Sequence record: NC_061441.1 | Length of the DNA: 64,000 nt | Reading direction: 5' to 3' (one strand) | Shown here: positions 40,697 through 59,744 of the stretch, one piece after another | Numbering within the stretch: the first letter of the stretch is position 1 | Layout of the letters: each line of letters starts with the position of its first letter | Notes under the pieces: generated by a model | Seen by the model: the letters and a program-made list of their open reading frames with translations, nothing else | The model's database searches: none | What the model was told of the DNA's origin: nothing | Program-made: the position numbers and the translations under genes

Positions 40697-41041
40697 ATGC
40701 GTTTCACCGAAGTATCAAAAGACGCACAGGTTGCGTTAATGTCTAGCGCACTTGCGGGAGTAATTGAGGCATTCACCCGCGAAGAAGATGATGAAGGCCG
40801 CAAGATTCTAGTTCTGGCCCTCAAGCAAGTCGGTCTGACGGTAGATGAGTTCAGCGCACTTATCTCTGACTTGTCGCCAGAAGTTGAGCTTGAGATCGTT
40901 CGCGTTATGGAAGCTGCTGATGCCGAAGCGGATGAAGAAGACGCAGACAGCGAACTCGACACGATGGAAGAGCGCCCAGGCAACCTGAACGATGCGCCGA
41001 ACATTAATGCAGACGGCTGGGAGAATCTCAAAGATGAGTAG
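40697..41041 (+). CDS. Acidic hypothetical protein
   Basis: AGGAGG SD. Confidence 0.8.
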   Translation: MRFTEVSKDAQVALMSSALAGVIEAFTREEDDEGRKILVLALKQVGLTVDEFSALISDLSPEVELEIVRVMEAADAEADEEDADSELDTMEERPGNLNDAPNINADGWENLKDE

Positions 41042-41237
41042 TCAAGATGATGTGAATGGTAGAATTGCTGCGGCCGACGAGCAACGTCAGAAAGAGCGTG
41101 AATCACGCTATGATGATTGGTCGATTGACGACCTGCGTGATGCTCTGCTTGAGAATGGTCTTGTATTTGACGGTGAAGACGTAGACGACTACAGCCGCGC
41201 AGACTGTATCAGACTGCTACTGGCTGATGGCTTCTAA
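41034..41237 (+). CDS. Small HeH-motif protein
   Basis: YDDWSIDDLRDALLENGL...SRADCIRLLL. Confidence 0.7.
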   Translation: MSSQDDVNGRIAAADEQRQKERESRYDDWSIDDLRDALLENGLVFDGEDVDDYSRADCIRLLLADGF

Positions 41238-41290
41238 GCACAAAACTGGACAAAATCGTGGTTGTCTCAAATAGCTGCCTGAACTATACT
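41235..41290 (+). promoter_or_regulatory. Promoter cassette copy 9
   Basis: TAAGCACAAAACTGGACAAAATCGTGGTTGTCT; TATACT at 41285. Confidence 0.8.
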
Positions 41291-41338
41291 ATATAGACAG
41301 CGAGACAACTATCTCTCTGTATGCCTTTGTTATTGCTT

Positions 41339-41380
41339 GACCGTGCGTTTTTCGATTTTCCCGGACGCACGGTCCTTTTT
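41339..41380 (+). terminator. Terminator-like hairpin ending a putative small RNA
   Basis: GACCGTGCGT/ACGCACGGTC perfect 10-bp stem followed by CTTTTT. Confidence 0.7.
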
Positions 41381-41494
41381 AAAGTGGACTTCGCTGAGGT
41401 TCCTTTAAAAAGGGTTCGATACCCTTTGAGCGCGTCGGGCTTTACGCGGTTTCCGCCTTACGTGCTCTCATGCTAAACCGCAAAGGAAATTGAA

Positions 41495-42253
41495 ATGCCT
41501 ACTACTTCACGTCCTAAGACAGAAGACAAGTTTTCCCGTGCTCGCGCCGCCAAAAACTCACCTGAGCGTCAGGCCGCGGCCACCAAGAAAACGCCACGAG
41601 GTCCTTCCTCGGTTCGTCCTAAATCAACGGCAGATCGTGAGCCTAAGATTCGTGACGAGGAGCGTGTGTACAATCTCGTACATGCAATTCTGAGCGCGTG
41701 GAAAGCTGATGTGGGACATGCCGAAAACACGGCAGCCTCTGCTGGTATCATCAAAGTGTCTCGCCGTAAAATTGAAGGCTCCTTGCGTGACCTCAAGAAT
41801 ACGCGCTTCACTAAAATCCCGACGCTCATTAATGACGTCCTCGTGTATAACGAAGTCTGCAATGAGTTCGGGCAGTGGGTGTACGTTGAGCATGACAGTC
41901 CTGATTGGATTTTCGTGCGACTGCCGGATAACAGCACACCTGTGATTCGTGCTGATATCAGCTACGACAAGACAGGCAAAACTGCCGCATCTGTTTCAAC
42001 TTCAAGCGAAGTTTTGCTGGAAGACTTGGACGAAGAAGAGGAAGATGAAATCCCTGAGAACGTCGAATATGACGACGAGGACGATTCTGATGTGAATGAA
42101 GAAGAGGACGACGAGGAGGAGTACCAGTCCTGGTCCCTCAGCCAACTTCAAAACTTTGCTAAGGCCGAAGGTTACATCGGCATCAAAGATGAAGGTTGGA
42201 ACGACCGCCAGACGCTTCTTGCTCGCATCCTGAATAAGGGAGCAATCAAATGA
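41495..42253 (+). CDS. Basic N-terminus / acidic tract / HeH protein
   Basis: AAGGA SD; YQSWSLSQLQNFAKAEG...NDRQTLLARIL. Confidence 0.85.
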   Translation: MPTTSRPKTEDKFSRARAAKNSPERQAAATKKTPRGPSSVRPKSTADREPKIRDEERVYNLVHAILSAWKADVGHAENTAASAGIIKVSRRKIEGSLRDLKNTRFTKIPTLINDVLVYNEVCNEFGQWVYVEHDSPDWIFVRLPDNSTPVIRADISYDKTGKTAASVSTSSEVLLEDLDEEEEDEIPENVEYDDEDDSDVNEEEDDEEEYQSWSLSQLQNFAKAEGYIGIKDEGWNDRQTLLARILNKGAIK

Positions 42254-42699
42254 GTCTGACTATTCGCTCTGCTGCCGAAACTGCTGCAATGATCATTGAA
42301 AACGTCACTCTCTACTCTCAAGAGAAGGGGCACGAATATCCGCTGCCGCGCTTTAAGATGCCCGACAATGCGATACGTCGAATCTCTGGTCATGCTCGCG
42401 TTCTGCCTGAAAGCTATATTGAGCAACTGTCTATCGAGCTGCAACAAATCGACTGGATGATGCTGCGGTATAACGCCGGCGAGTTCTTGTTCATGCACTA
42501 CGATATCCCAAAGAACTGGACGCGACTGAGTGCGAAGCGTGTGGTCCCTAATGACGACCCTGCCGCTGAGTACGATACGTGGACGCTTCCTGAACTTCAG
42601 GGATTCGCTCAACGTAACGACTTTTTGCAGCCTGACGAAGAGGGCTTCAACGATAGAGCGTCACTGATTCGCGCTATCATGCTAGGCGAGACCCATTGA
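42250..42699 (+). CDS. Hypothetical protein with C-terminal HeH motif
   Basis: YDTWTLPELQGFAQRND...NDRASLIRAIM. Confidence 0.85.
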   Translation: MSLTIRSAAETAAMIIENVTLYSQEKGHEYPLPRFKMPDNAIRRISGHARVLPESYIEQLSIELQQIDWMMLRYNAGEFLFMHYDIPKNWTRLSAKRVVPNDDPAAEYDTWTLPELQGFAQRNDFLQPDEEGFNDRASLIRAIMLGETH

Positions 42700-42717
42700 G
42701 TAGGGGAAGATAATCGA

Positions 42718-42864
42718 ATGAACAAATCTAAGCGGGACGCAGAAGACCCCGACATTGCTAAAATGCGCAAGCGTCTGGTAGATGCGAAAATCATCAAGCC
42801 AGAAGCTGCTGTGAAGCTGTCAAGCAATGACATTGTGAAGCTGTACACTTACTACAGCGTATAA
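42718..42864 (+). CDS. 48-aa HeH-like miniprotein (not in ORF track)
   Basis: GGGGAAG SD; IAKMRKRLVDAKIIKPEAAVKLSSNDIVKLY resembles the 43030 C-terminus. Confidence 0.65.
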   Translation: MNKSKRDAEDPDIAKMRKRLVDAKIIKPEAAVKLSSNDIVKLYTYYSV

Positions 42865-42910
42865 GCAATAATGAGCAGGCAGTGAACGTGCTGCCTGCTA
42901 TCTGCGAAGT

Positions 42911-42966
42911 ATGCAGAAAACTGGACAAAATCGTGGTTGTTATCTGAAAGCAACCTATGCTATACT
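42911..42966 (+). promoter_or_regulatory. Promoter cassette copy 10
   Basis: GCAGAAAACTGGACAAAATCGTGGTTGTTA; TG-C-TATACT at 42958-42966. Confidence 0.85.
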
Positions 42967-43029
42967 TAATGCAGACGCAATATCGCGTCGGCAAGCAAAT
43001 CAAACAACAAATACTGAGGAGTATTAATC

Positions 43030-44619
43030 ATGGCACGTCTGGAAACTAACACTAACCTGGTTGGCAAAACTATCATCCTGCTGAACGGCACCAAATCTAA
43101 AATCGAAGATGCAATCGCGTCTGGCTATAAAGTGAAGGGCCAGTCAAAACGTATCGCCACCCGCTGCGTCATCAAAGAAGGTTCTCACTTCCGCGAAATT
43201 GAGCGCATGAACATGAGCCAGCTGGAAGATACTGGTGAAGGTTACGTTAAACTGAAAGATGCGAAAGCGTCTGGTAAGAAAGCTGGCGCGAAAGAGAAAG
43301 AGCCGAAAGCGTCTGGCAAGAAGACTGGCGGCAAAGCTACGGCCAAAGAGAAAGAGCCGAAAGTTCGCCGTAAGTCTTCTAAAGAGCAAGGCGATGAGTA
43401 TCAGGCTCTGGCGAAAGAAATCATCAAAGGCGGCAAACGTGCTGCGCCAGTTGAAATCGACGAGATCGATGGCGACCTGACTGATACCGTTGCTCAACGT
43501 CTGGTAGACGTACTGAACAATACCGAAATCGCCAAGCTGTGCGCTGACAACAAAACGCCGATCGCTAACGCCATCGAAGTTGCTTACGGCGCTGAGTTCG
43601 CACCTGAAACAAACGTCATGCAGATCACGCTGAGCCTGCAATACGCGAAGCCTGTTAAAACGCAGTCATCTTCTACGCTGGAAAACGCCGATGCAATCGC
43701 GGCCCGTGCTAAGAAAATGATCGCGCCGAAGCTGTCTAAGAAACTCGCTAAGGCGATTCGTGAAGCGTTCGGCCTGGAAGACGCCGCCGAGCTTGAAGCT
43801 GGTACCGTGTTGTTGTCTGACGGCGCTGAGTTCGTCTTCTGCGGCGAGAGCGCGAAGCACCTCGGCAAAGCGCTGCTGTATGTTGTAGAGACCGACAAGT
43901 TCAAATCTGTTGTAGGCTCTGCGCTGGCTGATTACGAAATTGGTCAGGAAGAAGAAGAGGAAGAAGAGGAAGACCTCGAGGAAGAGGAGTCTGAGGAAGA
44001 AGAAGAAGAGGAGGAGGAGGAGGAAGAAGAAGACGGCGAAGAAGACGACGGTGAGTCTGACGATACTGAATACCAGTATGTGGCCGTGACCAAAGATCAT
44101 ACCAACATGATCAACAAGAAAGTCACCGCTAAGTATCACGCCGCGCTGGCTGAGCGCTTCAACACAACCGAAGAAGCTCTGGTACCTGGCCTCGTGTTGA
44201 CTGACGGCGAAACAACGTTCGCTTACCTGGGCTGTGATAGCAAAGGTGGTCTGCTGGTCATCGACGTTGAAGCTGAGGAGAACGAAGAAGACGTTCTGCT
44301 GTATAGCAAAGCCGATATCAAAGAACTGACCGACTTCAATCCTGTGCTGGATGACGTAGAAGGCGCTGCCGATGATGAAGGCGAAGAAGAAGACGGTGAA
44401 GAAGACGGTGAAGAAGAAGACGGTGAAGAAGATCTGGACGAAGAAGACGGCGAAGAGGAAGAAGACGACGAAGACTTCGACTTCGATGATGTTCCTGCCG
44501 TTGACCTGAAAGATCTGTCCGAAGACGAACTGCGTGACCGTGTCGTTGAAGCCGGCCTGACCACCGTGCGTAAAGCTGACAAAATGAACGCGGCTCAACT
44601 GCGCAAGCTCCTGAAATAA
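43030..44619 (+). CDS. Poly-Glu/Asp modular protein with duplicated internal domain and C-terminal HeH
   Basis: 529 aa; basic N-terminal repeats (KASGKK...KEKEPK twice); two acidic tracts; GAGGAG SD. Confidence 0.9.
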   Translation: MARLETNTNLVGKTIILLNGTKSKIEDAIASGYKVKGQSKRIATRCVIKEGSHFREIERMNMSQLEDTGEGYVKLKDAKASGKKAGAKEKEPKASGKKTGGKATAKEKEPKVRRKSSKEQGDEYQALAKEIIKGGKRAAPVEIDEIDGDLTDTVAQRLVDVLNNTEIAKLCADNKTPIANAIEVAYGAEFAPETNVMQITLSLQYAKPVKTQSSSTLENADAIAARAKKMIAPKLSKKLAKAIREAFGLEDAAELEAGTVLLSDGAEFVFCGESAKHLGKALLYVVETDKFKSVVGSALADYEIGQEEEEEEEEDLEEEESEEEEEEEEEEEEEDGEEDDGESDDTEYQYVAVTKDHTNMINKKVTAKYHAALAERFNTTEEALVPGLVLTDGETTFAYLGCDSKGGLLVIDVEAEENEEDVLLYSKADIKELTDFNPVLDDVEGAADDEGEEEDGEEDGEEEDGEEDLDEEDGEEEEDDEDFDFDDVPAVDLKDLSEDELRDRVVEAGLTTVRKADKMNAAQLRKLLK

Positions 44620-44702
44620 ACCTGTAGTATCGCAACACTGAATAATGTACGCCTCAGACAGGGGCGTACATCTGACAACTAAGCTGATTGAGGAATCACA
44701 CT

Positions 44703-45953
44703 ATGTCAAACGCAAACAAAATTCTGCTTAACGCCCGTGTTCGTCGTACTGATGGCACCATCACTTACATCAACAAAGTAAACGCTAACGGTTATAGCAC
44801 CGACGCGAAAGGCCCGCAGATTCCTGTGAAGCGCATTGTGTTCGCAGGCAAAACGCTGAAAGAGATTGAACAGCCATTCGCAAAAGGCGAGTACGTGATT
44901 GTGCAGGGTGTCGCTGTGAAGTTGAACAAGCGCCAGCAACGTGAACTGGCTGATGGTACTCTCGACGAGAAAGCGCTGCGTCCTGAGTTTGGCCGTTTGG
45001 TTATCATCGACCCTGAAACAGGCAAAGCAACTGACGGCAAGAAAGTGAAGCCGAAAGCTGACAAGAAAGACGGTGGCCTGAAAGCTACGCGCAAGCATAG
45101 CGGCGATACCAGCACGAAGAAAGAGCGCAAAGCTGAGAAGGCGAATCTGAAAGACGACCTTGACTTCATTCAGTCTGACAAGATTGACCGTAAAGCCGAA
45201 CTCGTCAAGCTCCTCGATGGCTCTATCGCTGACGCGAATACGAAAGAGCGCCGTAAGCAATTGTCCGAAGCGTTTGACATGGACTGGAAAGATCTTAAAA
45301 AGCACGGCGGTAAAGGTGTTGTCAAACATCTCGGCCGCAAGGCAGCACAAAGCGCCGTTGACCGTCTGTCTGCTACGCTGACGCAAGACGCATTCATCAA
45401 ACAAATGCCGACTGAGTTGAAGCGCCTGATTCAAGACCGTCGTCTGGTTCTGAATAAGCGTCAGATTGAAGCTGTACTCTCTGCATTGGGTCTGGACGTT
45501 AAGTTCTACGCCATCGCAATGCAAACGCTGCTGGGTAACCTGTCGCTCGCTGTAGACGACACGGCCGTGAATCCCAAAGCAGGTAAGAAAGCAAAGAAGC
45601 GCAAACCAGCAAAGCCTGAGTATGCGTCTGATAAAGAAATAAAGCGCCGTATCAAAAAGATGAAAGTCAGTTTGATCATGCCTCCTAAGAGCGAAATCAA
45701 AACGGCTAAAGCTCACCTGAAACAAGCGAAAGCCATTCTCGCCGACAAGCTGGGTATCTCGGCGAAAGATATCAAGCGCGGTCTGATCGTGCATCATAAG
45801 AACGGCGTTGACTACATGTTCGTTGCGTGTGACCTGCGCGGACCAATCTTCATCGACAAAGATGGTGATCCGTCTGTGTATACCTACGCCAACCTCGAAT
45901 CGACTTTCGACTTCACGCTGGCGAAATCTTCTGAGCTGGATGAGGCTGTATGA
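44703..45953 (+). CDS. Basic paralog of 43030..44619
   Basis: Shares the N-terminal domain and one copy of the internal domain; Lys-rich; GAGGA SD. Confidence 0.88.
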   Translation: MSNANKILLNARVRRTDGTITYINKVNANGYSTDAKGPQIPVKRIVFAGKTLKEIEQPFAKGEYVIVQGVAVKLNKRQQRELADGTLDEKALRPEFGRLVIIDPETGKATDGKKVKPKADKKDGGLKATRKHSGDTSTKKERKAEKANLKDDLDFIQSDKIDRKAELVKLLDGSIADANTKERRKQLSEAFDMDWKDLKKHGGKGVVKHLGRKAAQSAVDRLSATLTQDAFIKQMPTELKRLIQDRRLVLNKRQIEAVLSALGLDVKFYAIAMQTLLGNLSLAVDDTAVNPKAGKKAKKRKPAKPEYASDKEIKRRIKKMKVSLIMPPKSEIKTAKAHLKQAKAILADKLGISAKDIKRGLIVHHKNGVDYMFVACDLRGPIFIDKDGDPSVYTYANLESTFDFTLAKSSELDEAV

Positions 45954-46333
45954 CAAATAACGAAATACTCCTGTCTGGTATGTTTGCTCAACTGTATGCG
46001 CGGCTGGTAACGGCCGCAATACTGAAAACGCATGTGTTCTATTCTGACTTGGCCCCGATAGTATTCGGCATCCAACTGTCCGAAGTGAGCACTGCGCAAT
46101 ATGACGCTCTGTGGGGTTTAGTAGCGACTTCTATGAGCGTCGATATCTCGCATGGAAGAGCACCGCTTGCTGCGCTCTATGTGTCGCGGTCAACTGATGA
46201 TAAGAAGCCGAGCCGCAAGTTCTTCCGTGAGTATCACAAGATTACAGGCAAGCATCTGTCGGACAAAGAGTGGCAAGCACTCGTCCAGCAGGTGTACACT
46301 CAATACGAATCAAATCTCCGAGAGCCATCATGA
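45950..46333 (+). CDS. Hypothetical protein
   Basis: GAGG SD; ATGA overlap. Confidence 0.75.
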   Translation: MTNNEILLSGMFAQLYARLVTAAILKTHVFYSDLAPIVFGIQLSEVSTAQYDALWGLVATSMSVDISHGRAPLAALYVSRSTDDKKPSRKFFREYHKITGKHLSDKEWQALVQQVYTQYESNLREPS

Positions 46334-46791
46334 AAAAAGCAAAGGTAGTAATTAGTCGTGGTGGATATCGACCGGCCTCCCACGAAGAAGCACAAAAGCT
46401 GGTGGTCGAAATGTTGTTAGCTTCAATCGGCGTTGACCCTACTATACTGAGCCAGCAAATGCTGTTGAACGTTGCGAACTATAACTTCCTGACGTCAATC
46501 GCAGATACAGGCAAAGCAAATAACGCGAACCAGACAACTCTGCATAAAACTGTAAAAGAACTTAATGCGTTTTGTAGATTGCACAAGATTCCGCTGGGCT
46601 TGCTAATTATGCCCCATACATCGGCTAGTGATTATGCTGGTGATGAGGTTGTAGCGATTCCGTGGGAGCATGTGCGTAAAAACACATTAAGCCAGAACGC
46701 TGTCAATTCCCTGTTCCAAACAGTCGAAGCTGATGGCTATCCGCAGTTTGTGACTGACGCGAAAACAGTAGAGGAATACAATGTTTTATGA
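46330..46791 (+). CDS. Hypothetical protein
   Basis: ATGA overlap. Confidence 0.75.
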   Translation: MKKAKVVISRGGYRPASHEEAQKLVVEMLLASIGVDPTILSQQMLLNVANYNFLTSIADTGKANNANQTTLHKTVKELNAFCRLHKIPLGLLIMPHTSASDYAGDEVVAIPWEHVRKNTLSQNAVNSLFQTVEADGYPQFVTDAKTVEEYNVL

Positions 46792-48061
46792 TCACGTATT
46801 CAACCACGACGAAAAGCTAACGCTCTTGTCGGTGGCTGAGTCTAAATTCCTGGTGCGGCTCGACTGCCCTGATTACTTGAAGAAGTCGAAGCACTCAATT
46901 GAGATTCGCCACACTGTAACGAACCGCGGCGAGCAACGTCGAAGCGGTGTTGTGAATACAACCTTTGTTCCGCGTATTCATACTGCAACCGTTCAGCGTT
47001 TGGTGCGTGAAGTTCGTGACAATGCTAACGTTAGTTCTGCGAACAGCCTAGCCGCGTTGTTCGAACTTGGCCTGGGTGTGCCTAAGCAAAAGGACATTGC
47101 AACGTACCTGCGAGACTACTCGCGTGATAACGATAAGAAGGGCGTGGGCATCAAATATATCCGCAAACTGATTAACGAGTATCATCGCAAGCACCGTCAT
47201 AGTTTTGCAGGAAGTCGCTGGCTGATGCCTGCTGTGTACACCGCGAACTTGCTGAACATGCAGTCATTCATTCATCTGAAAGAAGACGGTTACAGCAAGA
47301 AGGTCAAAGTGCCTGACGGTCTGCCTGTTGTTCTGATCTACCAGAACACGAACCACGCCGAAGCTGAGTTCTCTTTGTGTGACGCGTTTGCGATTAGCCC
47401 ACTGGGTTATCCGATGCCGTTCGCCCAGATTGCTCTGCGTCCTGAGTTCAAAGCTGCACCGAAGACCTTCCGCTCTAAAGCGTTACGCGGCAAAGGTATG
47501 TATAGCATGGTGATGGGCATCATGCACTGGGAGAACGGCGATGCACTGTCGAACTTCCGCGAACTGATGGCTATCGACGACGAGCCGTATCTGACTCTGC
47601 TTGGCGATGAGCAATACGCTGACCGACGCAGCCCTGAGTATCAGGCTCTGTTGGACAAACGTGCTGAGTTCCATGAGCAACGCCACGAGCATAACGAAGC
47701 GATTGCGAAGTATGGCAACACGACCCGTACGCTCAAGCCTAAGCAGGTGGAACGACTCGAACGTGCGGAAGCCTTCTTCAAAGAACGCAAGGCGTTTATG
47801 GACGAGTTTGATAAGTTCGAGAAGAAAGAGAACCATCACGCTGCGAAGAAATTCGCTGTGGCCCGAGCGCAGTTTGCTGCCGTTGATTGTGGTACCGTTA
47901 TCGACCGTTCAACCTACATGGCGGTTGCTTCCGGCCTTGATACTGTAAACAAGATTCTCACGAAGTGGGGATTTACGACGGTCGACACTGTTAATAGTAG
48001 TTTGAAGAAGTCTATCCTTACATATGACCCAACGACCGCTACTCGCGTCTGGTCTGTGTAA
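46781..48061 (+). CDS. Hypothetical protein with coiled coil
   Basis: 426-aa ORF; GAGGA SD. Confidence 0.85.
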   Translation: MFYDHVFNHDEKLTLLSVAESKFLVRLDCPDYLKKSKHSIEIRHTVTNRGEQRRSGVVNTTFVPRIHTATVQRLVREVRDNANVSSANSLAALFELGLGVPKQKDIATYLRDYSRDNDKKGVGIKYIRKLINEYHRKHRHSFAGSRWLMPAVYTANLLNMQSFIHLKEDGYSKKVKVPDGLPVVLIYQNTNHAEAEFSLCDAFAISPLGYPMPFAQIALRPEFKAAPKTFRSKALRGKGMYSMVMGIMHWENGDALSNFRELMAIDDEPYLTLLGDEQYADRRSPEYQALLDKRAEFHEQRHEHNEAIAKYGNTTRTLKPKQVERLERAEAFFKERKAFMDEFDKFEKKENHHAAKKFAVARAQFAAVDCGTVIDRSTYMAVASGLDTVNKILTKWGFTTVDTVNSSLKKSILTYDPTTATRVWSV

Positions 48062-48085
48062 ACCACTTATCTGAGGAGATAACGC

Positions 48086-51091: not shown

Positions 51092-51103
51092 TATCGTCTA
51101 AAC

Positions 51104-51132
51104 GAGTGGCTCGAAAGGGCCACTCACTTTCT
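51104..51132 (+). terminator. Intrinsic terminator
   Basis: GAGTGGCTC-GAAA-GGGCCACTC followed by ACTTTCT. Confidence 0.75.
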
Positions 51133-51147
51133 TGGGGATCTGTAAAC

Positions 51148-51969: not shown

Positions 51970-52063
51970 TCTGTAAAAGTTACCTGCAATCAAAACTGTA
52001 AACACTAATTGAAGTTCGAACCGAGCGACAAGCTCACACTTATAAAATCCCGGAGCATTAACA

Positions 52064-52615
52064 ATGGCTAAAGCACCAAAGACTTCACTGACACCTACCC
52101 TGGTTTCTCGTATCGCTAAAAAATCCGGCTCTATCGGTACTTCAAAAGTTAAGCCGTCTGACCTGCCGCACGATATCGTGATGGAAACCGTGTTGCCTGT
52201 TGAGCTGATTGGCTTCATTACCGACCGCACCGAAAACAGCGTTACCATTCGTCACAAAAAAGGTCACGGTTCTTCTGCGCAAATCGTTTCTACCTTCGGC
52301 CCGAACCAACTGCTGTCCGTGCTGGGCGAAGCTGGTTCTCACGGTAGCGTTATCGCTCTGATTAATGCGCCGGTTCGTGAGTACAAAGGCTTCAACGTTA
52401 AATACAAAGGCTCAACGCTGATCGCTACCTCTGTTGAGACTGGCGAAGTTGTTGAAGTGAACACCGCACTGCCTGGCATTACCGTTCGCGCTACTGTGAA
52501 CGAAACTGCTGCCGCTAAAAAGTACGGTACGCCGCTGCCTACCAAAGCTAAAAAGCTGGACAAAGGCGACAAAGCTGGCAAATCTGCGAAAGCGGTAAAG
52601 AAAGTAAAAAAGTAA
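52064..52615 (+). CDS. Beta-rich protein with Lys-rich termini
   Basis: GGAG SD; strong codon bias; C-tail KAKKLDKGDKAGKSAKAVKKVKK. Confidence 0.88.
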   Translation: MAKAPKTSLTPTLVSRIAKKSGSIGTSKVKPSDLPHDIVMETVLPVELIGFITDRTENSVTIRHKKGHGSSAQIVSTFGPNQLLSVLGEAGSHGSVIALINAPVREYKGFNVKYKGSTLIATSVETGEVVEVNTALPGITVRATVNETAAAKKYGTPLPTKAKKLDKGDKAGKSAKAVKKVKK

Positions 52616-52641
52616 GTAAGTCTGACGAAGACTTCTAACTT

Positions 52642-52712
52642 TCGAAATCTGTAAATATTAAGTATGCAGCGGGATAAAATGTTCCGCTGCCTGTCTCTCG
52701 AAATCTGTAAAT
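52642..52712 (+). repeat. 15-bp direct repeat containing the TCTGTAAA motif
   Basis: TCGAAATCTGTAAAT at 52642-52656 and 52698-52712. Confidence 0.85.
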
Positions 52713-52758
52713 CTTAATTGAAGCAACGTCGCTTCTAATCAAACAGGAAATAAATACC

Positions 52759-53553
52759 ATGGCTAAAGCAACCGCAAATACCGCAGCAATCGTTCTGGCT
52801 AAAATGCTGGGCGTAGTTATCGAAAACGCCGACGCGAAAGAAATCGCAGCAATCCTGAAAGAAGCCGGTCTGACTGTCTCTGGCGGTAAAGTGGTAAAAG
52901 CTGAAAAAGGCGGTAAAGCTGCTAAAGGCAAAAAGGCCAAAGCACCTACCGTTGCTGAAATCGTCGCTGCCATCAAGGACGAAGAAGAACTGGACATCTC
53001 CGGCGTAAGCGAAGATGACCTGCGCGCCGCTGTAGTTAAAGCGAAACTGTCCACCGCTAAGAAAGCAAAAGCGCTGGACGAAGATGACCTGCGCGATCTG
53101 CTGAACGAAAACCTGGGCGGCGAGTCCGATGAGGACGAAGACGAAGAAGAAGAGGACGACGAAGACGAAGACGAGGACGAAGACGACTCGGACGACGAAG
53201 ATGAAGACGGCGACGACGAAGACGACGAAGACTCTGATGAAGAAGAAGAGGACGACGAAGACGACGAAGACGGCGACGACGATGAAGAAGAAGACGAGGA
53301 CGAAGACGAGGATGAAGATGAGGACGAAGATGATGAAGATGATCTCGACCTCGACTCCCTCGACAAGAAAGAGCTGTTAGCTCTGGTCCTCGAACACAAG
53401 CTGGCGCCGGCTAAGAAAGCCAAGAAAATGGACGAAGATGAACTGCGCGAACTGTGCGAAGAACACTTCGGCGGCGAAGATGACGAAGACGAAGATGAGG
53501 ACGAAGACGACGAAGACTTCGACGATGAAGACGAAGACGAAGACGACGAATAA
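52759..53553 (+). CDS. Poly-Asp/Glu protein with two HeH repeats
   Basis: 74-residue almost pure D/E tract (53122-53343); repeats LDISGVSEDDLRAAVVKAKL...LDEDDLRDLL and LDLDSLDKKELLALVLEHKL...MDEDELRELC. Confidence 0.9.
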   Translation: MAKATANTAAIVLAKMLGVVIENADAKEIAAILKEAGLTVSGGKVVKAEKGGKAAKGKKAKAPTVAEIVAAIKDEEELDISGVSEDDLRAAVVKAKLSTAKKAKALDEDDLRDLLNENLGGESDEDEDEEEEDDEDEDEDEDDSDDEDEDGDDEDDEDSDEEEEDDEDDEDGDDDEEEDEDEDEDEDEDEDDEDDLDLDSLDKKELLALVLEHKLAPAKKAKKMDEDELRELCEEHFGGEDDEDEDEDEDDEDFDDEDEDEDDE

Positions 53554-53771
53554 GTCCTGATCTGAACCGGCCGCCCCTCTAGTTCTAACGAATGAGCGAG
53601 GGGCAAATATTCGTGTTAAAATGATGCGAATATTTTTGTAAAAAGTTTCAAAATTCCTGTTGTCGTATGTTGAACATAATAATGTATGACTACAGGAAAT
53701 CAAACCTGAATAAATTTATCTTTTCATCCAGCGGTGAAAACGCCGCATCAAATATAAAGTAAGGAACTATC

Positions 53772-54290
53772 ATGTCCAAGAAAGCAATTAGCGGCCTGAA
53801 CAAAGAAATCCGCGCAATCGAAAAATCTGAAAAAGCTCTGACCAAAACCGCTGGCGAAATCACCAAACAGTCCGAAGCGCTGGCTGCTCGTCGTGCTGGT
53901 CTGAGTGCCCAGGTCGAAGCTCTGCAAAACGACGGCGCGGCTCCTGCTGCTAAACCTGCTAAAGCGAAAGCCGCTAAAGCAGAGAAAGCTGCTAAGCCTG
54001 CCAAAGCTGAAAAAGCTGGCAAAAAAGCTAAAGCTGAAAAAGCTGAAAAACCTGCTAAGGCTAAAAAAGCCAAAGCTGAGAAAGCTGAGAAGCCTGCTAA
54101 AGCAGACAAAAAAGCAAAAGCCGCCAAAGCTGAAAAGCCGGCCAAAGCTGAAAAAGCTGGTAAGAAAGCTAAAGCAGAAAAACCTGCTAAAGCTGAAAAA
54201 GCCGGTAAGAAAGTGAAAGCAGACAAAGCTGGCAAAGCCGGTAAGAAAAGCAAAAAAGAAGCCGAAGACTTCGACTTCGATATGGAATAA
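53772..54290 (+). CDS. Histone H1-like (Hc2/AlgP-like) Lys/Ala/Pro repeat protein
   Basis: N-terminal coiled coil, then tandem KPAKAEKAGKKAKAE-type repeats, then acidic tail EAEDFDFDME; AAGGA SD. Confidence 0.85.
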   Translation: MSKKAISGLNKEIRAIEKSEKALTKTAGEITKQSEALAARRAGLSAQVEALQNDGAAPAAKPAKAKAAKAEKAAKPAKAEKAGKKAKAEKAEKPAKAKKAKAEKAEKPAKADKKAKAAKAEKPAKAEKAGKKAKAEKPAKAEKAGKKVKADKAGKAGKKSKKEAEDFDFDME

Positions 54291-54322
54291 GCAAGCGCCG
54301 CTCATTAGCGGTACTTGATTCG

Positions 54323-54354
54323 AAAGGGCAGCGCTGACGAGCGTTTGCCCTTTT
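54323..54354 (+). terminator. Intrinsic terminator
   Basis: AAAGGGCA-GCGCT-GACG-AGCGT-TTGCCCTTTT. Confidence 0.8.
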
Positions 54355-54387
54355 GTCATATCTGTGTCAATTTTCGAGGTGAATCGA

Positions 54388-54870
54388 ATGTCTGCCGAAC
54401 ATCTGCTTAACGACGACCTGCCTGACGACTCCTTAGTTGTCCCTGCCCTCAAACAGGACAAGCCTTCCTATTACGACTTGATGACGCTACGCTTAGAAGC
54501 TGGCGCACGTCTTGCTCGCTCCCTTAAAACTCTGGTCGATGCGCGTGTCATTCACGGTCCAGCGTTAAACGACCTGCTCCCAGCCGCATTGCGTATCGCT
54601 GAAACCCACTGGGCTGATATCTGCAATGGCCTAACTCCTGTTCACGACGAGAGCAATAAAATCACGCTTGTCGGTAATCTCCCTGCCTGCATCGAAGCGT
54701 TCCGCATTGTCGTCATGGAACATGCACAACGTAACGCACTGGAACTTGAGTGCCGTAACATGGTGGCACACGACGATGGCTTTAAGCTGCTGACTCGCCC
54801 ACAACTGCTGCATATTGAACCTAAACATGTCTGCGATGGAAACTGCGACCATGACTCAAAAACTGTCTGA
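54388..54870 (+). CDS. Hypothetical protein
   Basis: GAGGTG SD. Confidence 0.75.
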   Translation: MSAEHLLNDDLPDDSLVVPALKQDKPSYYDLMTLRLEAGARLARSLKTLVDARVIHGPALNDLLPAALRIAETHWADICNGLTPVHDESNKITLVGNLPACIEAFRIVVMEHAQRNALELECRNMVAHDDGFKLLTRPQLLHIEPKHVCDGNCDHDSKTV

Positions 54871-55393
54871 GCAACTCAACCGATATTTCAACCTCATGGA
54901 GAAAATCCGTGAGCAACTGTTCCGCACTCTGCCTGTGTCCGACCGTTACATGTGCATCGTAAGTTTCAGCACACAGTACCAGGCACTACAATGCGACCTC
55001 GTTAGCAAAGAGAGTCTGCTCCCTGCTAAACTTCTCGAAGGCCTGACTGGTCAAGAGCTGGTGGTGTATGGAACAATCAAAGCCCAGATTGAAAAGTGGG
55101 TTGCGGACGGTATGGTGGACGACTTCCCTATCGCACAACATGCCGACACGTATGCTCAATATCGTGTGTCTGTTGGTGATGCAGAAGCAGACCAGAGCCG
55201 TCAGACGATAGCTGATGAGGACTTGGCTGCGTATGTTGAGTCGCTTCCCAAGTCAGATGCCCTGAAATACGTTGACCCTCTGAGCAAGTATGAGCTGGCT
55301 ATTCTCTGCAAAGCATGGGGCATTCCCCAAGATGCCAGTGAGACTGTCATGCTGTCTCTCATCAAGGGTCATATTCTGCGCCGCGCTCCCTAA
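54851..55393 (+). CDS. Hypothetical protein with C-terminal HeH motif
   Basis: LSKYELAILCKAWGIPQDASETVMLSLI. Confidence 0.75.
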   Translation: MTQKLSEQLNRYFNLMEKIREQLFRTLPVSDRYMCIVSFSTQYQALQCDLVSKESLLPAKLLEGLTGQELVVYGTIKAQIEKWVADGMVDDFPIAQHADTYAQYRVSVGDAEADQSRQTIADEDLAAYVESLPKSDALKYVDPLSKYELAILCKAWGIPQDASETVMLSLIKGHILRRAP

Positions 55394-55397
55394 CTCA

Positions 55398-55456
55398 AAC
55401 TCTGCATATTTCTGGACAGAACCTGAGTAGCGTCTAATACTTTCGTATGATATAAT
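55398..55456 (+). promoter_or_regulatory. Promoter cassette copy 11 (upstream of topoisomerase operon)
   Basis: AACTCTGCATATTTCTGGACAGAA; TG-A-TATAAT at 55448-55456; GG 37 nt upstream. Confidence 0.8.
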
Positions 55457-55521
55457 AGCTTGAGACAAGTAGTGTCTGAACATGCTAATATCGAGTAGTT
55501 AAACGCTACTCATAGGAGAAC

Positions 55522-57555
55522 ATGAAAATGGCCAAAGCGCCGAAGGCTGCCAAAGTTAAAAAGAATACCGGTGACGGTTCCCAAGAAGGGTTCGTCATTG
55601 CGGAAGGACTTGACGGGATTCGTTTGAATCCGGGAATGTACATGGGTGAACGTGGCTCCGACATGGCGTACCGCGGAGTTAAGGAGCCTGTTGATAACGT
55701 CTATGACGAATTGATGGCGGGCCGCACCAAAGTTCTGGAAGTTGTGATTGACTACGACAACGACCTGAACATCGTAGCCGATATGGCGAAAGGCATTCCG
55801 ACCGACTTCAAGAAACTGAAAGACGGTTCGAAAGAAACTATCATGACCGCAGCGTTTAGCCGTGCTCATGCTGGTGGTAAGTTCAACGACCAAGCATATA
55901 AGACCTCTGCCGGTACTCACGGCGTAGGCGTTGCCGCACTGAATGCAATCTCCAGTCAGTTGCGTGTGTGGTCAATGTACAAAGGTGGCTGCGCATACCA
56001 GATGTGGGAATGCGGTGTTGCCAAGTCTGGTAAAGACCCTAAGCAGGTCAAAGCCGTAGACAAAGATGTTATGAGTCTGCTGCGTGAAAAGAAACACAGC
56101 AAGTACGGTACGATTGTCGCATGGACCCTCGACCAGACCGTTGTGTCTGCTGACGTACAGCGCGGTAAGAAGTTGCCGAAGAACTATCGTCACGCTTCGC
56201 CAGACCCAGCACGTATCGGTGAGTGGCTTCGCAACATGTCGCTGCTTAACCCAGGCTTCGAGATTCGCCTGACGCTTATCAAGAAAGGCAAGCGTAAAGA
56301 GTTCACTTTCCACAACAAGAAAGACCTTGCGTTTATCGTGAAGACGATGGTAGACGAACGCGAGTTGGAGATCGTCGGTAAGCCGTTCACGTTCCAACAT
56401 GAGAACATCACGGCAGCGCTTGCGTGGACTAACCATGCAGACACTGACAACTTCCTGTCTTTCGTTAACACCAGCCCTACAGTTGACGGCGGGTGGCACG
56501 TTGTTGGTTTCCGTGACGCGCTGTTTGAAGCTATCAAGCCTTTCATGAAAGAGCCGAAAGGTAAAGGCAAGAAGAAGCAGGGATTCAAACAAGAAGACTT
56601 GCTCATCGGCCTGACTGGTATGTTCGACTGGCGTATGCACGGTGCTCAATACACCTCACAGGTTAAAGATAAGCTGGCGAGTCGTGTTGAGAAAGAAGTG
56701 TACGAGCTGATGAAAGACCAGCTTGTGAAATACTTCAAGGACAATAAGAAAGTCGCAACGACGATCATCAAACGCGCCGAAGCAATGAACAAAGGCCGCG
56801 AAGAATTGTCCGCAGTCGTGAAGTCTATGGCAGACACGAAGAAGAAGCTGAAAGGCAACTCGCTTCCTGCTGACCTGATCTCTGCGCTCAAGTGTAAGCC
56901 GCATGAGCGCGAGCTTATCGTGGTGGAAGGTGATTCTGCTGGTGGTACTGCTAAACATGCGCGTAACCCTGACCATCAGGAAGTTATGCTCGCTGGTGGT
57001 AAGCCGCTGAATGGGCTGAAAGCAAGTCTGGCTGACGTGCTCAAGCACAAAGAAGTGCAGGGCATGTTGGTGTCTGTAGGCGCTGACCTGAAATCGCTTG
57101 ACCCGAAAGCTGAAAACCCAGTGTTGAGCACGAAAAACCTGCGTATCGGTAACTTGCTTTTCCTGATGGATGCTGACCCTGACGGCTTCCACATCGCAAC
57201 GTTGTTCTTGGGCGTTATCTATCGTCTGCTGCCTGATCTGATGAAAGAAGGTCGTGTGTGGATTGTCGATGCACCTCTGTATAACGTGATGCACAAAGGC
57301 ATTCACTATGGCGGTATGACGTTCGAAGAATGCCGCTCTAAAGCACCGTCTGCTGTAAAAGACAAAGAGATTGTACGCGCTAAAGGTTGGGGTGAAGTTG
57401 AACCTGACGTACTTGAAGCTATCGCGTTCAATCCGAAGACTCGCCGTTTGATTCGCGTTAACCCGTTCGTTAGCGTAGAGCAAGAGCGTTTCTTCCGTGG
57501 TGTTGTGGCAGAAGATGCCGTGCATCGTCGTCGTCTGCTGGGTCTGGAGGATTAA
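55522..57555 (+). CDS. gyrB: Type IIA topoisomerase subunit B (GyrB/ParE-like)
   Basis: IRLNPGMYMG, KEPVDNVYDE, HAGGKF, GTHGVGVAALNA (GHKL ATPase); EGDSAGG, DADPDGFHI, KGWGE (TOPRIM). Confidence 0.96.
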   Translation: MKMAKAPKAAKVKKNTGDGSQEGFVIAEGLDGIRLNPGMYMGERGSDMAYRGVKEPVDNVYDELMAGRTKVLEVVIDYDNDLNIVADMAKGIPTDFKKLKDGSKETIMTAAFSRAHAGGKFNDQAYKTSAGTHGVGVAALNAISSQLRVWSMYKGGCAYQMWECGVAKSGKDPKQVKAVDKDVMSLLREKKHSKYGTIVAWTLDQTVVSADVQRGKKLPKNYRHASPDPARIGEWLRNMSLLNPGFEIRLTLIKKGKRKEFTFHNKKDLAFIVKTMVDERELEIVGKPFTFQHENITAALAWTNHADTDNFLSFVNTSPTVDGGWHVVGFRDALFEAIKPFMKEPKGKGKKKQGFKQEDLLIGLTGMFDWRMHGAQYTSQVKDKLASRVEKEVYELMKDQLVKYFKDNKKVATTIIKRAEAMNKGREELSAVVKSMADTKKKLKGNSLPADLISALKCKPHERELIVVEGDSAGGTAKHARNPDHQEVMLAGGKPLNGLKASLADVLKHKEVQGMLVSVGADLKSLDPKAENPVLSTKNLRIGNLLFLMDADPDGFHIATLFLGVIYRLLPDLMKEGRVWIVDAPLYNVMHKGIHYGGMTFEECRSKAPSAVKDKEIVRAKGWGEVEPDVLEAIAFNPKTRRLIRVNPFVSVEQERFFRGVVAEDAVHRRRLLGLED

Positions 57556-57557
57556 TC

Positions 57558-57812
57558 ATGTTCAACGTTTCAAACTTACCTGACGGCACAATGGTACGTT
57601 TTCTTGATATGCCTGCTGTGCAATACCCACCACTGACTGAGGAACAAAACAGTCAGTGTGAGTCATTGTACGGGCAAGCGCGTGAACTGGCGAAGAACGT
57701 TAATGTGTCTGGGTTCACTGTCGTTGACGGCAAACTGAATGAGCGTGTGCAGGTTCAAATGAGCCGCACCCCTCTCGATAAGATCAATGCGATTGCCAAG
57801 GGAGAACAGTAA
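57558..57812 (+). CDS. Hypothetical protein between topoisomerase subunits
   Basis: GGAGG SD; TAATG-coupled to subunit A. Confidence 0.75.
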   Translation: MFNVSNLPDGTMVRFLDMPAVQYPPLTEEQNSQCESLYGQARELAKNVNVSGFTVVDGKLNERVQVQMSRTPLDKINAIAKGEQ

Positions 57813-59464
57813 TGGCAATTACGCCGAAGAAAGTAAAAAAGGTTAAAGCGACTGCGGTAGCAAAAGCCGCTAAGCCTGCAAAGCTCAAGTCGAAAGCGGT
57901 ATCTGCCGACGACATTAAGAAGAAGAAAAAGAAAAGCACCGAAACATCCGCAACAACGGCGGTCGGCATTTCTCTCTATCCGATGCTGGGACAAGATGAG
58001 TCGCTGATTCGTGACGAGAACCTCGCGGACTATACGCGCCGCGCTCTCTTCCAGTATGGCTCATACGTTGTTGAAGACCGCGCTATCGCTGACTACCGTG
58101 ACGGTCTCAAGCCTGTGCACCGTGCGCTGCTTTGGTCTCTATGTGACTTGGGCCTACGTCCCGGCGGAGCGTTCAAGAAGTCTGCGCGTACTGTTGGTGA
58201 TGCGTTAGGTAAGTATCACCCGCACGGCGATGCTGCTTGTTACGGTGCGATGGTAACGATTGCGAATACAGTGCCACCAGCCGTAGCTGGCCAAGGTAAC
58301 TGGGGAGACCCTGTAGCACCTGCTGCTGCGATGCGTTATACCGAAGCGAAGATGAGTAAGTTTGCGGGTAGCTTCCTGCTGGACCCAGACTATCTCGAAG
58401 TGACGCCGATGGTAGACAACTTCTCGAACGACATGAAGATACCTCTGTATCTGCCCGCGCTGCTGCCGTACATGTTGTTCAATGGTAGTGTGCCTGCTCC
58501 AGCGTATGGCGTTAAGTGCGGTAACCCATCGTTCAGCTTTACGTCAGTCAGTAAGGTCGTGTGTGACATGCTGGCAGGTAAAGAGTACGATGCGAAGAAG
58601 CTGGCGAAGACGCTTGAGATTAACCACGAGTACGGTTGTCTTGATGCAAGCTCCGATGCTGACTATCTCGCATTGATCGAAACAGGTCGCGGCAAAGTCA
58701 CATACGAACCTCAGATGAAGGTCGATGAGAAGACGAAGACCATCACTGTGCAAACGTATGTGCCTGGCGGTATGTCCAACAACGCAGCCATCACGAAGAA
58801 GCTGGAGAAGATTGCAGAGTGGTCTGGTGTTGTCTCTGCGTCGAACGCCAGCTCGAAGAAGAACAAAGACGCGGGCCCGTGGGGTGCAGCGTTTGCGATT
58901 CGTTGTCGTGGTAGCGAAGACCTGCTGTATGAAATTGCAGAGAAGGTGAAGAAAGAAATCACCAGCGCCATTAACTATTCTCTCGGTGTGACAGTGCGCC
59001 GCGCTGATGCCTCAAACAAGTTCATGTACCTGAGCTACGTGAAGTATTTCAAAGCGTGGATTGCGTATCGCATTAAGCTGGAAACTGCGATGCTCACCAA
59101 CAAGAAGGCGAAAGCAGAGAAAGCCCTTCATCTGCAAGAAGTCTACTTGTGGGCAGTTGACAACATGAAGCAACTGCTGGCCGCACTGCCGAAAGCCCTG
59201 ACCGCAGAAGACCCAGACAAGATGCTGGCGAAGCTGTGTAAGATTCCTGTTGAAGATGCGAAAATCATCCTCGACCGTCAAGTGCGTAAACTGGCGAAAC
59301 TTGAACGTGCTGGGCTGGTGGCCAAGATTAAGGAAATCAAGGCCGAGATTGCAGAGTATAAAGCGGGACTGAAAGAGCCTGGTAAATACGCTGCTGCTGG
59401 AACGGCTGCTAAAGTTAAGGCATACCTGAAATCGCCTGACGATAAGCTGCCTGTAGGTCTGTAA
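57812..59464 (+). CDS. gyrA: Type IIA topoisomerase subunit A (GyrA/ParC-like, no beta-pinwheel CTD)
   Basis: DGLKPVHR, KKSARTVGDALGKYHPHGD, GQGNWG, AAMRYTEAK (catalytic Tyr); 550 aa. Confidence 0.96.
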   Translation: MAITPKKVKKVKATAVAKAAKPAKLKSKAVSADDIKKKKKKSTETSATTAVGISLYPMLGQDESLIRDENLADYTRRALFQYGSYVVEDRAIADYRDGLKPVHRALLWSLCDLGLRPGGAFKKSARTVGDALGKYHPHGDAACYGAMVTIANTVPPAVAGQGNWGDPVAPAAAMRYTEAKMSKFAGSFLLDPDYLEVTPMVDNFSNDMKIPLYLPALLPYMLFNGSVPAPAYGVKCGNPSFSFTSVSKVVCDMLAGKEYDAKKLAKTLEINHEYGCLDASSDADYLALIETGRGKVTYEPQMKVDEKTKTITVQTYVPGGMSNNAAITKKLEKIAEWSGVVSASNASSKKNKDAGPWGAAFAIRCRGSEDLLYEIAEKVKKEITSAINYSLGVTVRRADASNKFMYLSYVKYFKAWIAYRIKLETAMLTNKKAKAEKALHLQEVYLWAVDNMKQLLAALPKALTAEDPDKMLAKLCKIPVEDAKIILDRQVRKLAKLERAGLVAKIKEIKAEIAEYKAGLKEPGKYAAAGTAAKVKAYLKSPDDKLPVGL

Positions 59465-59744
59465 GAAATCTGTAAATACAACTAAGCATATTCTAGGACG
59501 AAACGCGGTTGTATCTGTATGTCAATTCTGTTACAATTGACTTGTTGGGGATAGCTGATTGTTGGGAGATAATCAGCTATCCAAATCTATAACAGGAGGG
59601 CAAGGTAGCGCAGCAAATATTCACTCAGGAAAAATAAACCGAGCCTAAAAGGCCGACCGCTACGGCATACTCAGAGTGAGCACCGTACGCAATACTATTA
59701 ATCGACCCACGTAATGCTAATATGATATCGTATCGGCATTCGAA

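Follow-up and report, generated by a model that had tools for sequence, protein, structure and literature searches.

Disordered acidic tails of phage replication proteins (T4 gp32, T7 gp2.5, the T7 helicase-primase) compete with DNA and dock on basic patches of replisome partners; the T7 tails end in an aromatic residue. Lys/Ala/Pro-rich tails, as in actinobacterial topoisomerase I and in HU-type and AlgP/Hc1-type proteins, raise DNA affinity or processivity. To our knowledge, the chimallin nucleus is the one case in which it is understood how jumbo phages organise their replication in space. For phage SPO1, with its transcription-switch condensates, phase separation has been proposed to organise phage development, a role called previously unclear in the same paper (PMC13401047).

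The window analysed here, a stretch of 64 kb, is the last 64 kb of the genome of Erwinia phage pEa_SNUABM_16 (Alexandravirus, 267 kb). A charge-extreme gene module in it is real and conserved; the first-pass annotation had proposed a charge-driven phage chromatin or compartment system at this place, and that interpretation as a whole is partly supported. Its gene coordinates were borne out, with every gene of the locus on the + strand; for topoB, RefSeq places the start at 55528. The features are as follows.

41034-41237, + strand: gp321, small, acidic; C-terminal HeH-like unit at 41100-41234 (Ish1 E=0.002, below cut-off).
41495-42253, + strand: gp322, basic N-terminus; acid-rich segment at about residues 175-211; C-terminal HeH-like unit at 42113-42244.
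42250-42699, + strand: gp323, C-terminal HeH-like unit at 42562-42687.
43030-44619, + strand: gp325, Lys-rich block; two poly-D/E tracts; E-D-F-D-F-D motif; C-terminal HeH-like unit.
44703-45953, + strand: gp326, basic, net +31.
46781-48061, + strand: gp329, conserved, non-repetitive; served as synteny anchor.
48086-51091, + strand: gp330, 1001 aa; net -192; acidic C-terminal tail.
51104-51125, + strand: terminator-like hairpin immediately 3' of gp330, called by consensus match alone.
51148-51969, + strand: gp331, promoter-like motif just 5' (51138) and another within the gene (51438).
51969-51977, + strand: promoter-like motif ATCTGTAAA, 5' of gp332.
52064-52615, + strand: gp332, all-beta core between Lys-rich tails.
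52647-52655 and 52703-52711, + strand: promoter-like motif in two tandem copies, 5' of gp333.
52759-53553, + strand: gp333, 264 aa; 47% D/E; net -97.
53772-54290, + strand: gp334, Lys/Ala/Pro/Glu tandem repeats; acidic Phe-x-Phe C-terminal tip.
54851-55393, + strand: gp336, C-terminal HeH-like unit at 55262-55378.
55528-57555, + strand: topo II large (GyrB-like) subunit, topoB; Lys/Ala N-terminal tail of about 18 residues.
57812-59464, + strand: topo II A-type subunit, topoA; Lys-rich N-terminal extension of about 55-60 residues including a K6 run.
59468-59476, + strand: promoter-like motif immediately 3' of topoA; position kept in Y3, Yoloswag and Yen9-02.

Every protein of the module bears the annotation hypothetical. 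No functional family was obtained for any of them in Pfam, PHROGs or NCBIfam, family-model searches gave no match to a characterised DNA-binding or chaperone family, and a literature search found no experimental data on members of the clade. Alexandravirus is placed by taxonomy outside the Chimalliviridae genera. The earlier remark that chimallin and tubulin genes are not evident extends to the whole genome, since neither appears among the 344 annotated features of the record; multisubunit RNA polymerase is likewise not annotated there, and a sigma factor is encoded (absence of chimallin, PhuZ tubulin and split multisubunit RNA polymerases as judged from annotation and taxonomy).

Near-pure D/E tracts had been ascribed to four proteins; they are present in gp325, gp330 and gp333, whereas the segment in gp322 is merely about three quarters D/E. 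Runs of at least 10 D/E codons gave 40 overlapping matches in the window versus 0 in 100 shuffles, and in pattern searches of the 267-kb genome poly-D/E runs of at least 10 occur in only five genes (gp325, gp330, gp333, the SSB gene gp246, and gp141), three of which fall in this locus. The product of gp141, which adjoins the major head gene, likewise ends in an acidic run. In gp333, helical and HeH-like units, a Lys linker, acidic tracts (residues 120-200, 81 residues; residues 237-264, 28 residues) and an invariant Phe in the acidic C-terminal tail can be distinguished; gp330 has four acidic tracts (net -192); gp325 (net -71) has tracts at residues 305-345 and 448-487, the former starting near 43948 as originally read. 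Charge blocks are strongly segregated in these three proteins (z 11-14), with z=5.3 for gp322. The tracts are codon repeats whose lengths differ between close relatives. The Prothymosin family of Pfam matched the poly-E tract of gp325 only, at 17.9 bits against a cut-off of 23.9, and the match is composition-driven.

An acidic-Phe motif of the E-D-F-D type is common to gp325, gp330, gp333, gp334 and gp332 orthologues; coding matches to E-D-F-D number five in the window versus 0.17 expected, four of the five within module proteins. Its Phe residues are invariant among orthologues, as are the flanking helical units. As to the reported HeH motifs, profile searching gave seven units resembling helix-extended-helix, distributed over six proteins (one each in gp321, gp322, gp323, gp325 and gp336, two in gp333), all within 41100-55378, the same units having seeded the profile. 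Three of the seven match Ish1 (E=0.001-0.002) or SAP (E=0.02), all under Pfam gathering scores, and the fold assignment is suggestive. The helical units of gp330 were considered as members of this family and were ruled out by the profile (hhalign probability 0.1%); in the structure model of gp330 a helix-extended-helix topology, taken as two helices with an extended stretch of about 8-10 residues between them, occurs four times (pLDDT 85-91), in units that are profile-unrelated to the seven. In that model, N- and C-terminal alpha/beta domains flank the helical modules and the acidic linkers between modules are disordered; a fold search gave no PDB match for gp330. The models of gp330 and gp332 alike consist of folded cores surrounded by disordered tails and linkers. 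Paralogy of gp325 and gp326, prompted by their like N-termini, was not supported (BLASTP E above 5).

Among the basic proteins, gp334 (30% K+R, net +27) has a conserved, predicted coiled-coil-like N-terminus of about 55 aa, followed by 5.5 imperfect tandem copies with a period of 45 nt; D/E (15% of the protein) recur with regular KAEK-type spacing amid Ala/Pro repeats. It had been termed histone H1-like. The C-terminal tail of linker histones is rich in Lys/Ala/Pro and almost free of acidic residues, and gp334 resembles it in the former respect but not in the latter; kinship in sequence with histone H1 or the Hc1/AlgP-type families is not seen. No H1 match was obtained, nor any match in Pfam, NCBIfam or PDB sequences, the bacterial H1-like Hc1/AlgP-type families in Pfam and NCBIfam included, and the winged-helix globular domain of linker histones (Pfam Linker_histone) was not found; the likeness is therefore compositional. 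For gp332 the model gives a confident all-beta core (residues 34-150) flanked by disordered Lys-rich tails, the core having no significant PDB fold match (best E 0.08, TM about 0.15); many gp332 orthologues finish in an acidic tip with a terminal Phe. Both gp332 and gp334 are polycationic, and gp326 probably is.

The Lys/Ala tails noted on both topo II subunits are present as quoted. The enzyme is a T4-type type IIA topoisomerase (DNA_gyraseB 4e-27, Toprim 8e-9, DNA_topoisoIV 8e-57); the character of its tails is conserved in five genera, the topoA tail also in locus L028, and the topoA Lys tail is missing from T4-type gp52 (gp52 homologues found by tblastn). Lys-rich disordered tails are found on both topo II subunits, the DnaB-like helicase, the clamp loader, UvsX and SSB; in pattern searches across the genome, K5 runs turn up in topoA, helicase gp001, both ends of clamp loader gp213, SSB and gp184, and nowhere else. 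UvsX combines a Lys/Ala N-tail with an acidic tip, and the gp32-type SSB (gp246) has a greatly expanded, block-charged tail of alternating poly-D and poly-K, conserved in JA13 and PaBG. The suggestion that basic tails act as address tags fits this selectivity for DNA-replication proteins. Confinement of the charge system to 41-59 kb does not hold, because SSB, UvsX, helicase and clamp loader, encoded elsewhere, share the charge-tail theme.

Strong codon bias, also remarked on in the first-pass annotation, was confirmed: Nc is 30.1 for gp334, 31.7 for gp333 and 33.3 for gp332, the lowest among 91 window genes with the exception of one 100-aa ORF (33.2); values are 38.3 for gp325 and 40.1 for gp330, with a median of 48.1 for window genes of at least 100 aa. 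In phage Y3, Nc of gp332-334 is equal to or lower than that of the major capsid gene. The motif ATCTGTAAA has 22 coding-strand sites in the genome, 7 of them in the window versus 0.53 expected; it clusters 5' of gp331-333, the copy before gp331 abutting the annotated start codon. Other sites precede genes for DNA polymerase, clamp loader, sigma factor, dCMP deaminase, a ParB-like protein and ligase; none was found before head or tail genes. ATCTGTAAA is a phage-specific motif with a putative promoter role. Codon bias and the tandem copies of the promoter-like motif, each no more than a proxy for amount and timing, speak for very high expression. A second motif, TATCTGAAA, stands before the major head gene and gp325 and has just 8 sites genome-wide. 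A scan for sigma-70 promoter and terminator consensus sequences showed no enrichment over shuffles.

Synteny of the cluster in related phages, on which the original proposal depended, is observed: the module is kept in 57 phage genomes, in five named genera and at 19 IMG/VR loci, and it persists even in metagenomic relatives whose anchor gene, gp329, has fallen to 29% identity. Gene order, architecture and net charge are conserved across relatives (net charge in orthologues, gp330 -161 to -201; gp333 -89 to -100); total net charge and protein length are near-constant to 35% identity despite varying tract lengths. A 45-kb stretch of PaBG, examined for a topo II-linked module, is non-syntenic and without topo II. 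The adjacency to topo II could be mere conserved gene order of a colinear genome.

We favour, with a probability of roughly 40%, the reading of the locus as an electrostatic accessory module of high abundance, co-expressed with replication, in a jumbo phage without a nucleus. Lys tails and basic proteins would coat or tether phage DNA non-specifically; the polyacidic proteins would act as DNA-like competitors or chaperones for the Lys tails, much as phage SSBs use their acidic tails to regulate DNA binding and to recruit partners; the shared acidic-Phe motif may be a common docking point; and multivalent opposite charges could thereby bring replication and topology factors together on phage DNA under replication and let them exchange. 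A condensate or compartment is plausible but hypothetical, as a phase-separated factory would be. In its specific form, gp333, gp325, gp330, gp332, gp334 and the SSB tail would, across this clade without a chimallin shell, build on phage DNA a replication compartment that is a membrane-less complex coacervate, and topo II, helicase, clamp loader and recombinase would be recruited to it as clients by their poly-Lys tails. We consider this unlikely; if true, it would be a second, charge-based route to spatial organisation in jumbo phages.

Host-directed DNA mimicry, a doubtful reading, would make the polyacidic proteins decoys for what binds DNA in the host, such as nucleoid proteins, nucleases of restriction or other defence systems and possibly polyamines, by which phage DNA is protected or the host nucleoid dismantled, and the basic proteins and tails unrelated DNA binders. 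Acidic DNA mimics (Ocr, ArdA, Arn) are an established phage strategy; the negative charge here is extreme and conserved, the genes lie in a non-structural + strand block amid early/middle-type genes, and a sigma-70-like match stands 5' of gp325. Known mimics, however, are small and folded with fixed charge geometry, whereas the present tracts are disordered in the models and of variable length; there is no match to Pfam or PADLOC-type families, the structured mimic families Ocr and ArdA having no Pfam match among module proteins. Further against mimicry, the promoter-like motif is common to replication genes, the codon bias is at capsid level, which suggests stoichiometric rather than catalytic use, and the basic gp334 and gp332 carry the acidic-Phe motif too, a sign of an internal network of partners.

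Packaged internal proteins are a distinctly improbable alternative, in which gp332, gp334 and gp326 would neutralise the charge of the DNA in the very large capsid or be ejected with it, and the acidic ones would serve as scaffold-like or internal proteins. Codon bias matching the major capsid gene and the terminal acidic run of gp141 beside the major head gene agree with packaging, and T4 has abundant basic internal proteins encoded apart from its head genes, and also acidic core peptides. Yet the locus lies in a replication and nucleotide-metabolism block oriented opposite to the structural block, the promoter-like motif is missing from head and tail genes, no Y3 orthologue is annotated as a virion protein (the Y3 record shows no visible mass-spectrometry flags), and Lys tails on clamp loader and helicase are hard to account for by packaging. 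Absence of any joint function, with slippage-prone low-complexity expansions merely tolerated in unrelated neighbouring proteins, would explain codon-repeat tracts that vary in length among close relatives, but is very improbable given near-constant net charge and length to 35% identity, invariant Phe residues and flanking helical units, extreme codon bias, and synteny persisting to 29% anchor-gene identity.

The clade without chimallin includes candidates for biocontrol of fire blight and soft rot, and puts capsid-level coding effort into charge-extreme disordered proteins. If the interactions of the electrostatic accessory module hold, it would offer a tractable bacterial-virus case in which charge drives the organisation of nucleoprotein, and the participating proteins could be predicted from sequence by a simple rule (Lys tail, acidic-Phe tip); if the rival readings are true, the proteins would form a new class, either of DNA mimics that are long and disordered or of proteins inside the capsid.

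With the chimallin-bounded nucleus of Chimalliviridae the locus has in common a jumbo phage that could organise replication spatially; it differs in that chimallin, tubulin and multisubunit RNA polymerase are not annotated and a sigma factor is encoded. The SPO1 condensates concern another phage, other proteins and another process. Ocr, ArdA and Arn are likewise highly acidic phage proteins, but small, folded and of defined geometry, whereas the proteins described here are long, modelled as disordered and variable in tract length. Prothymosin-alpha, or the acidic tail of HMGB1, and histone H1 are oppositely charged disordered partners in the same manner, and the eukaryotic arrangement of a DNA-binding module with an acidic tail resembles the layout of gp333; unlike in the eukaryotic chromatin pairs, there is no homology, and gp334 is without the H1 globular domain and contains about 15% Glu. 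Compared with the tails known from actinobacterial topoisomerase I and from HU-type proteins, those of the present phage stand at the N-termini of a T4-type topo II and recur across the whole phage replisome. Likeness to the phage SSB tails lies in a gp32-type SSB, here with an expanded tail, and in the acidic-Phe tips on gp332 orthologues, gp333 and gp334; in contrast to those tails, the tracts here extend to 81 residues, stand in dedicated proteins too, and are matched by poly-Lys tails on many enzymes.

A search of the window for runs of at least ten D/E codons returned 40 overlapping matches, against none in shuffled sequence. Genome-wide they occur in five genes only (gp325, gp330, gp333, the SSB gene gp246, and gp141), genome-wide statements here and below being based on codon-pattern searches and reading of selected proteins rather than on a full proteome scan. 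The long acidic tracts described in the first-pass annotation were recovered in gp325 (529 aa, net charge -71), gp330 (1001 aa, net charge -192), and gp333 (264 aa, D/E 47%, net charge -97); the near-pure D/E tract also ascribed to gp322 is an acid-rich segment of only about three quarters D/E. Charges are segregated into blocks in gp325, gp330, and gp333 (z 11–14 versus shuffles), in contrast to gp334 (net +27), a well-mixed polyampholyte. An imperfect tandem array in gp334 (period 45 nt, 5.5 copies) bears out the repeat character of what had been called an H1-like protein; the H1 likeness found no support in sequence, neither gp334 nor gp333 matching solved structures or H1 or Hc1-type families. 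Elsewhere in the genome, gp141 (L004:4183-4884, minus strand; 233 aa), encoded two genes away from the major head gene, has a terminal E8D3 run, the only poly-D/E run of the structural block. An ORF called mechanically from 51028 (51028-51147) starts with poly-Arg that corresponds to out-of-frame gp330 C-terminal acidic codons and is probably untranslated, since RefSeq places the gp331 start at 51148.

The phage, pEa_SNUABM_16 (NC_061441.1; 266,838 bp; window position = record position - 202,838), belongs to the genus Alexandravirus, and the window covers the final 64 kb of its record. All genes considered in the locus lie on the + strand and, the two topo II subunits excepted, are annotated as hypothetical in the record. 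Genome annotation includes a sigma factor, a gp32-type SSB, a UvsX-like recombinase, a clamp loader, a DnaB-type helicase, and a T4-type topo II; chimallin, tubulin, and multisubunit RNA polymerase are absent from the full annotation, which extends to the whole genome the earlier remark that no chimallin or tubulin gene is evident in the window. The genera of Chimalliviridae do not include Alexandravirus or its relatives Sasquatchvirus, Yoloswagvirus, and Salmondvirus; in the literature, Alexandra, Y3, Yoloswag, the Dickeya JA/AD1 phages, and Pseudomonas phages PaBG and Lu11 are set apart together as a lineage of "hairy" jumbo myoviruses (PMC7412058, PMC6143709). No paper treating the locus genes was found in a literature search.

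Homologues of gp330 and gp334 turn up together, with unvarying spacing, in one set of 57 phage records (Erwinia, 48; Dickeya, 8; Yersinia, 1). Synteny across related jumbo phages, proposed earlier as a check, was found: the stretch gp325 to topo II has the same gene order and gene sizes in Y3, JA29, Yoloswag, and fHe-Yen9-02, and also in L028, the sole divergent locus among 19 recovered from IMG/VR that was read ORF by ORF. The anchor gene gp329 (46781-48061) is only 29% identical in L028 and in a second metagenomic relative, L029, and L028 orthologues retain each protein architecture. Poly-D/E runs are present in every related locus, in most of them at the three corresponding genes. In searches of 5.8 billion proteins, relatives of gp332, gp330, and gp333 were confined to this clade and carried no Pfam domain. 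Orthologues of gp330 (about 1000 aa; identity as low as 35%) carry net charges of -161 to -201, those of gp333 (259–266 aa) -89 to -100; in both, single tract lengths vary while total net charge and protein length stay nearly constant, which points to selection acting on bulk charge.

Lys/Ala tails were confirmed at the N-terminus of both topo II subunits; they are variable in sequence and kept in five genera and a metagenomic relative. By alignment, the topoA extension (about 54 residues) was added in this clade, because residue 9 of gp52 of the T4-type phage PP01 aligns with topoA residue 63. A survey of the phage genome for runs of five Lys codons returned five genes only (L002, L005, and L006 are parts of the genome outside the window).

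Genes with runs of five Lys codons
57812-59464, + strand: topoA, N-terminal tail
L002:85-1506: DnaB-like helicase gp001, C-terminal tail
L005:27383-28666, minus strand: clamp loader gp213, both ends
L006:1113-2381 (record 201113-202381, just upstream of window position 1): SSB gp246, tail
L005:5162-5974, minus strand: gp184, function not assigned, N-terminal 110 residues Lys-rich

The C-terminal tail of SSB gp246 (about 150 residues) alternates poly-D/E blocks with Lys/Ser/Arg blocks, its final eight residues being Lys; Dickeya phage JA13 shares this pattern, as does Pseudomonas phage PaBG, where the SSB core is just 39% identical. The UvsX-like recombinase has an N-terminal Lys/Ala/Glu tail and an acidic C-terminal tip. 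With these runs on helicase, clamp loader, SSB, and topoA, together with the UvsX tail, Lys tails are a selective mark of replication proteins, which carries the idea of basic tails as address tags beyond topo II, from which alone it was drawn. Short acidic patches adjoin some poly-Lys tails (gp001, gp213, gp184), and the gp001 tail is shared with Yersinia phage fHe-Yen9-02 (L010 23032-23046). The recombinase, gp247 (record 202440-204971; window part 1-2133), has 843 aa, roughly double the usual size; its Pfam RecA match is confined to residues 111-192 of the part encoded in the window. A long insert with boundaries of intein-like appearance follows, but a search for intein domains gave none at E<=0.01.

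Five matches to the coding pattern for E-D-F-D lie in the window (0.17 expected), four of them, with identical codons, in gp325, gp330, gp333, and gp334; the Phe residues are invariant across orthologue alignments. An acidic tip with a final Phe is found in many gp332 orthologues, but is absent from gp332 of pEa_SNUABM_16. Acidic tails that end in an aromatic residue are known from the replisomes of T7 and T4, where they dock onto basic patches of their partners, and by this analogy a common docking mode is proposed for the acidic-Phe motif.

The gp332 model has an all-beta core (pLDDT >90 at residues 34-150) flanked by disordered Lys-rich tails, without significant match in PDB. That of gp330, also without PDB match, comprises N- and C-terminal alpha/beta domains, four high-confidence helix/extended-linker/helix units, and the following linkers.

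Disordered acidic linkers of gp330 (predicted model)
Residues 238-275
Residues 331-354
Residues 442-475
Residues 638-664
Residues 985-1001

Against a viral library (BFVD), the gp330 model matched its JA29 orthologue and, significantly and by its globular domains, three much shorter uncharacterised proteins of 289–420 aa (PaBG S5WKD4, 356 aa, E 8e-6; two further entries of 420 and 289 aa). These matches suggest that the acidic/helical array is a clade-specific elaboration, and the ancestral protein may have lacked it. The helical units of gp330 are unrelated to a HeH profile seeded with seven units chosen by eye, which recovers exactly its seeds: gp321, gp322, gp323, gp325, gp333 (two), and gp336, all at 41.1–55.4 kb. 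Ish1 and SAP are helix-extended-helix families. The HeH motifs reported earlier are borne out only in part: when units were scanned singly, three had Ish1 or SAP as best Pfam match, all under curated thresholds. A marginal acid-rich HeH-like unit lies at 9536-9664 (profile E=1.3), and gp314 (36907-38343) has a HeH-looking C-terminus and E-D-F-D within a globular context; the motif family may have members that the profile misses.

The very strong codon bias noted for several genes is reproduced: Nc is 30.1 for gp334, 31.7 for gp333, and 33.3 for gp332, the lowest of the 91 + strand genes in the window except one 100-aa ORF (33.2), against a median of 48.1 for window genes of at least 100 aa; gp325 and gp330 are likewise low. 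In Y3, bias in the gp332-334 orthologues (Nc 32.3–34.7) equals or exceeds that of the major capsid gene (35.3) and exceeds that of tail sheath (45.5). Seven copies of the 9-mer ATCTGTAAA lie in the window (0.53 expected) and 22 in the whole genome, every one on the local coding strand, preceded by A in 21/22 and followed by T in 16/22.

Window sites of ATCTGTAAA (15 more in L002-L005, other parts of the genome)
3396
51138, upstream of gp331
51438, within gp331
51969, upstream of gp332
52647 and 52703, upstream of gp333
59468, directly after topoA

Other copies precede DNA polymerase, clamp loader, sigma factor (gp245), dCMP deaminase, ParB-like, and NTP pyrophosphohydrolase genes, and a relaxed form precedes DNA ligase; none of the genome sites is upstream of major head or tail genes. 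Most locus copies are conserved in position in Y3, JA29, Yoloswag, and Yen9-02. We infer a phage-specific promoter element common to the locus and replication genes, possibly read by gp245 itself; the copy touching the gp331 start codon fits a simple promoter model poorly. A similar though distinct string, TATCTGAAA (just eight genome sites), is present ahead of the major head gene (L004:6551-6559, minus strand) and of gp325 (42941-42949).

The best-supported reading of the observed composition, conservation, selectivity, and expression proxies, to which we give a probability of roughly 0.4, is that the locus encodes an abundant electrostatic module accessory to replication. Every interaction between its components is one that we infer: polycationic proteins and Lys tails would keep factors on phage DNA, and polyanionic proteins, by way of their acidic tracts and the acidic-Phe motif, would serve these as DNA-like competitors or as chaperones. 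That such a module amounts to a condensate or compartment has a low probability. Among other explanations, mimicry of DNA directed at the host is unlikely, and packaging of the products as internal proteins, the easiest rival to test, a little less likely again. Low-complexity expansions merely tolerated, with no joint function, are improbable in view of the codon bias, the constancy of net charge, and motifs that do not vary.

In the literature searched, no conserved phage module was found that joins dedicated polyacidic and polycationic proteins to a Lys-tagged replisome. A 2026 paper on phage SPO1 (PMC13401047) states that it had not been clear what part phase separation plays as phages develop. 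For the electrostatic accessory module favoured here, each single ingredient is known elsewhere: acidic tails in SSB; Lys-repeat tails in actinobacterial topoisomerase I; H1-like proteins in bacteria; and polyacidic/polybasic disordered pairs in eukaryotic chromatin.
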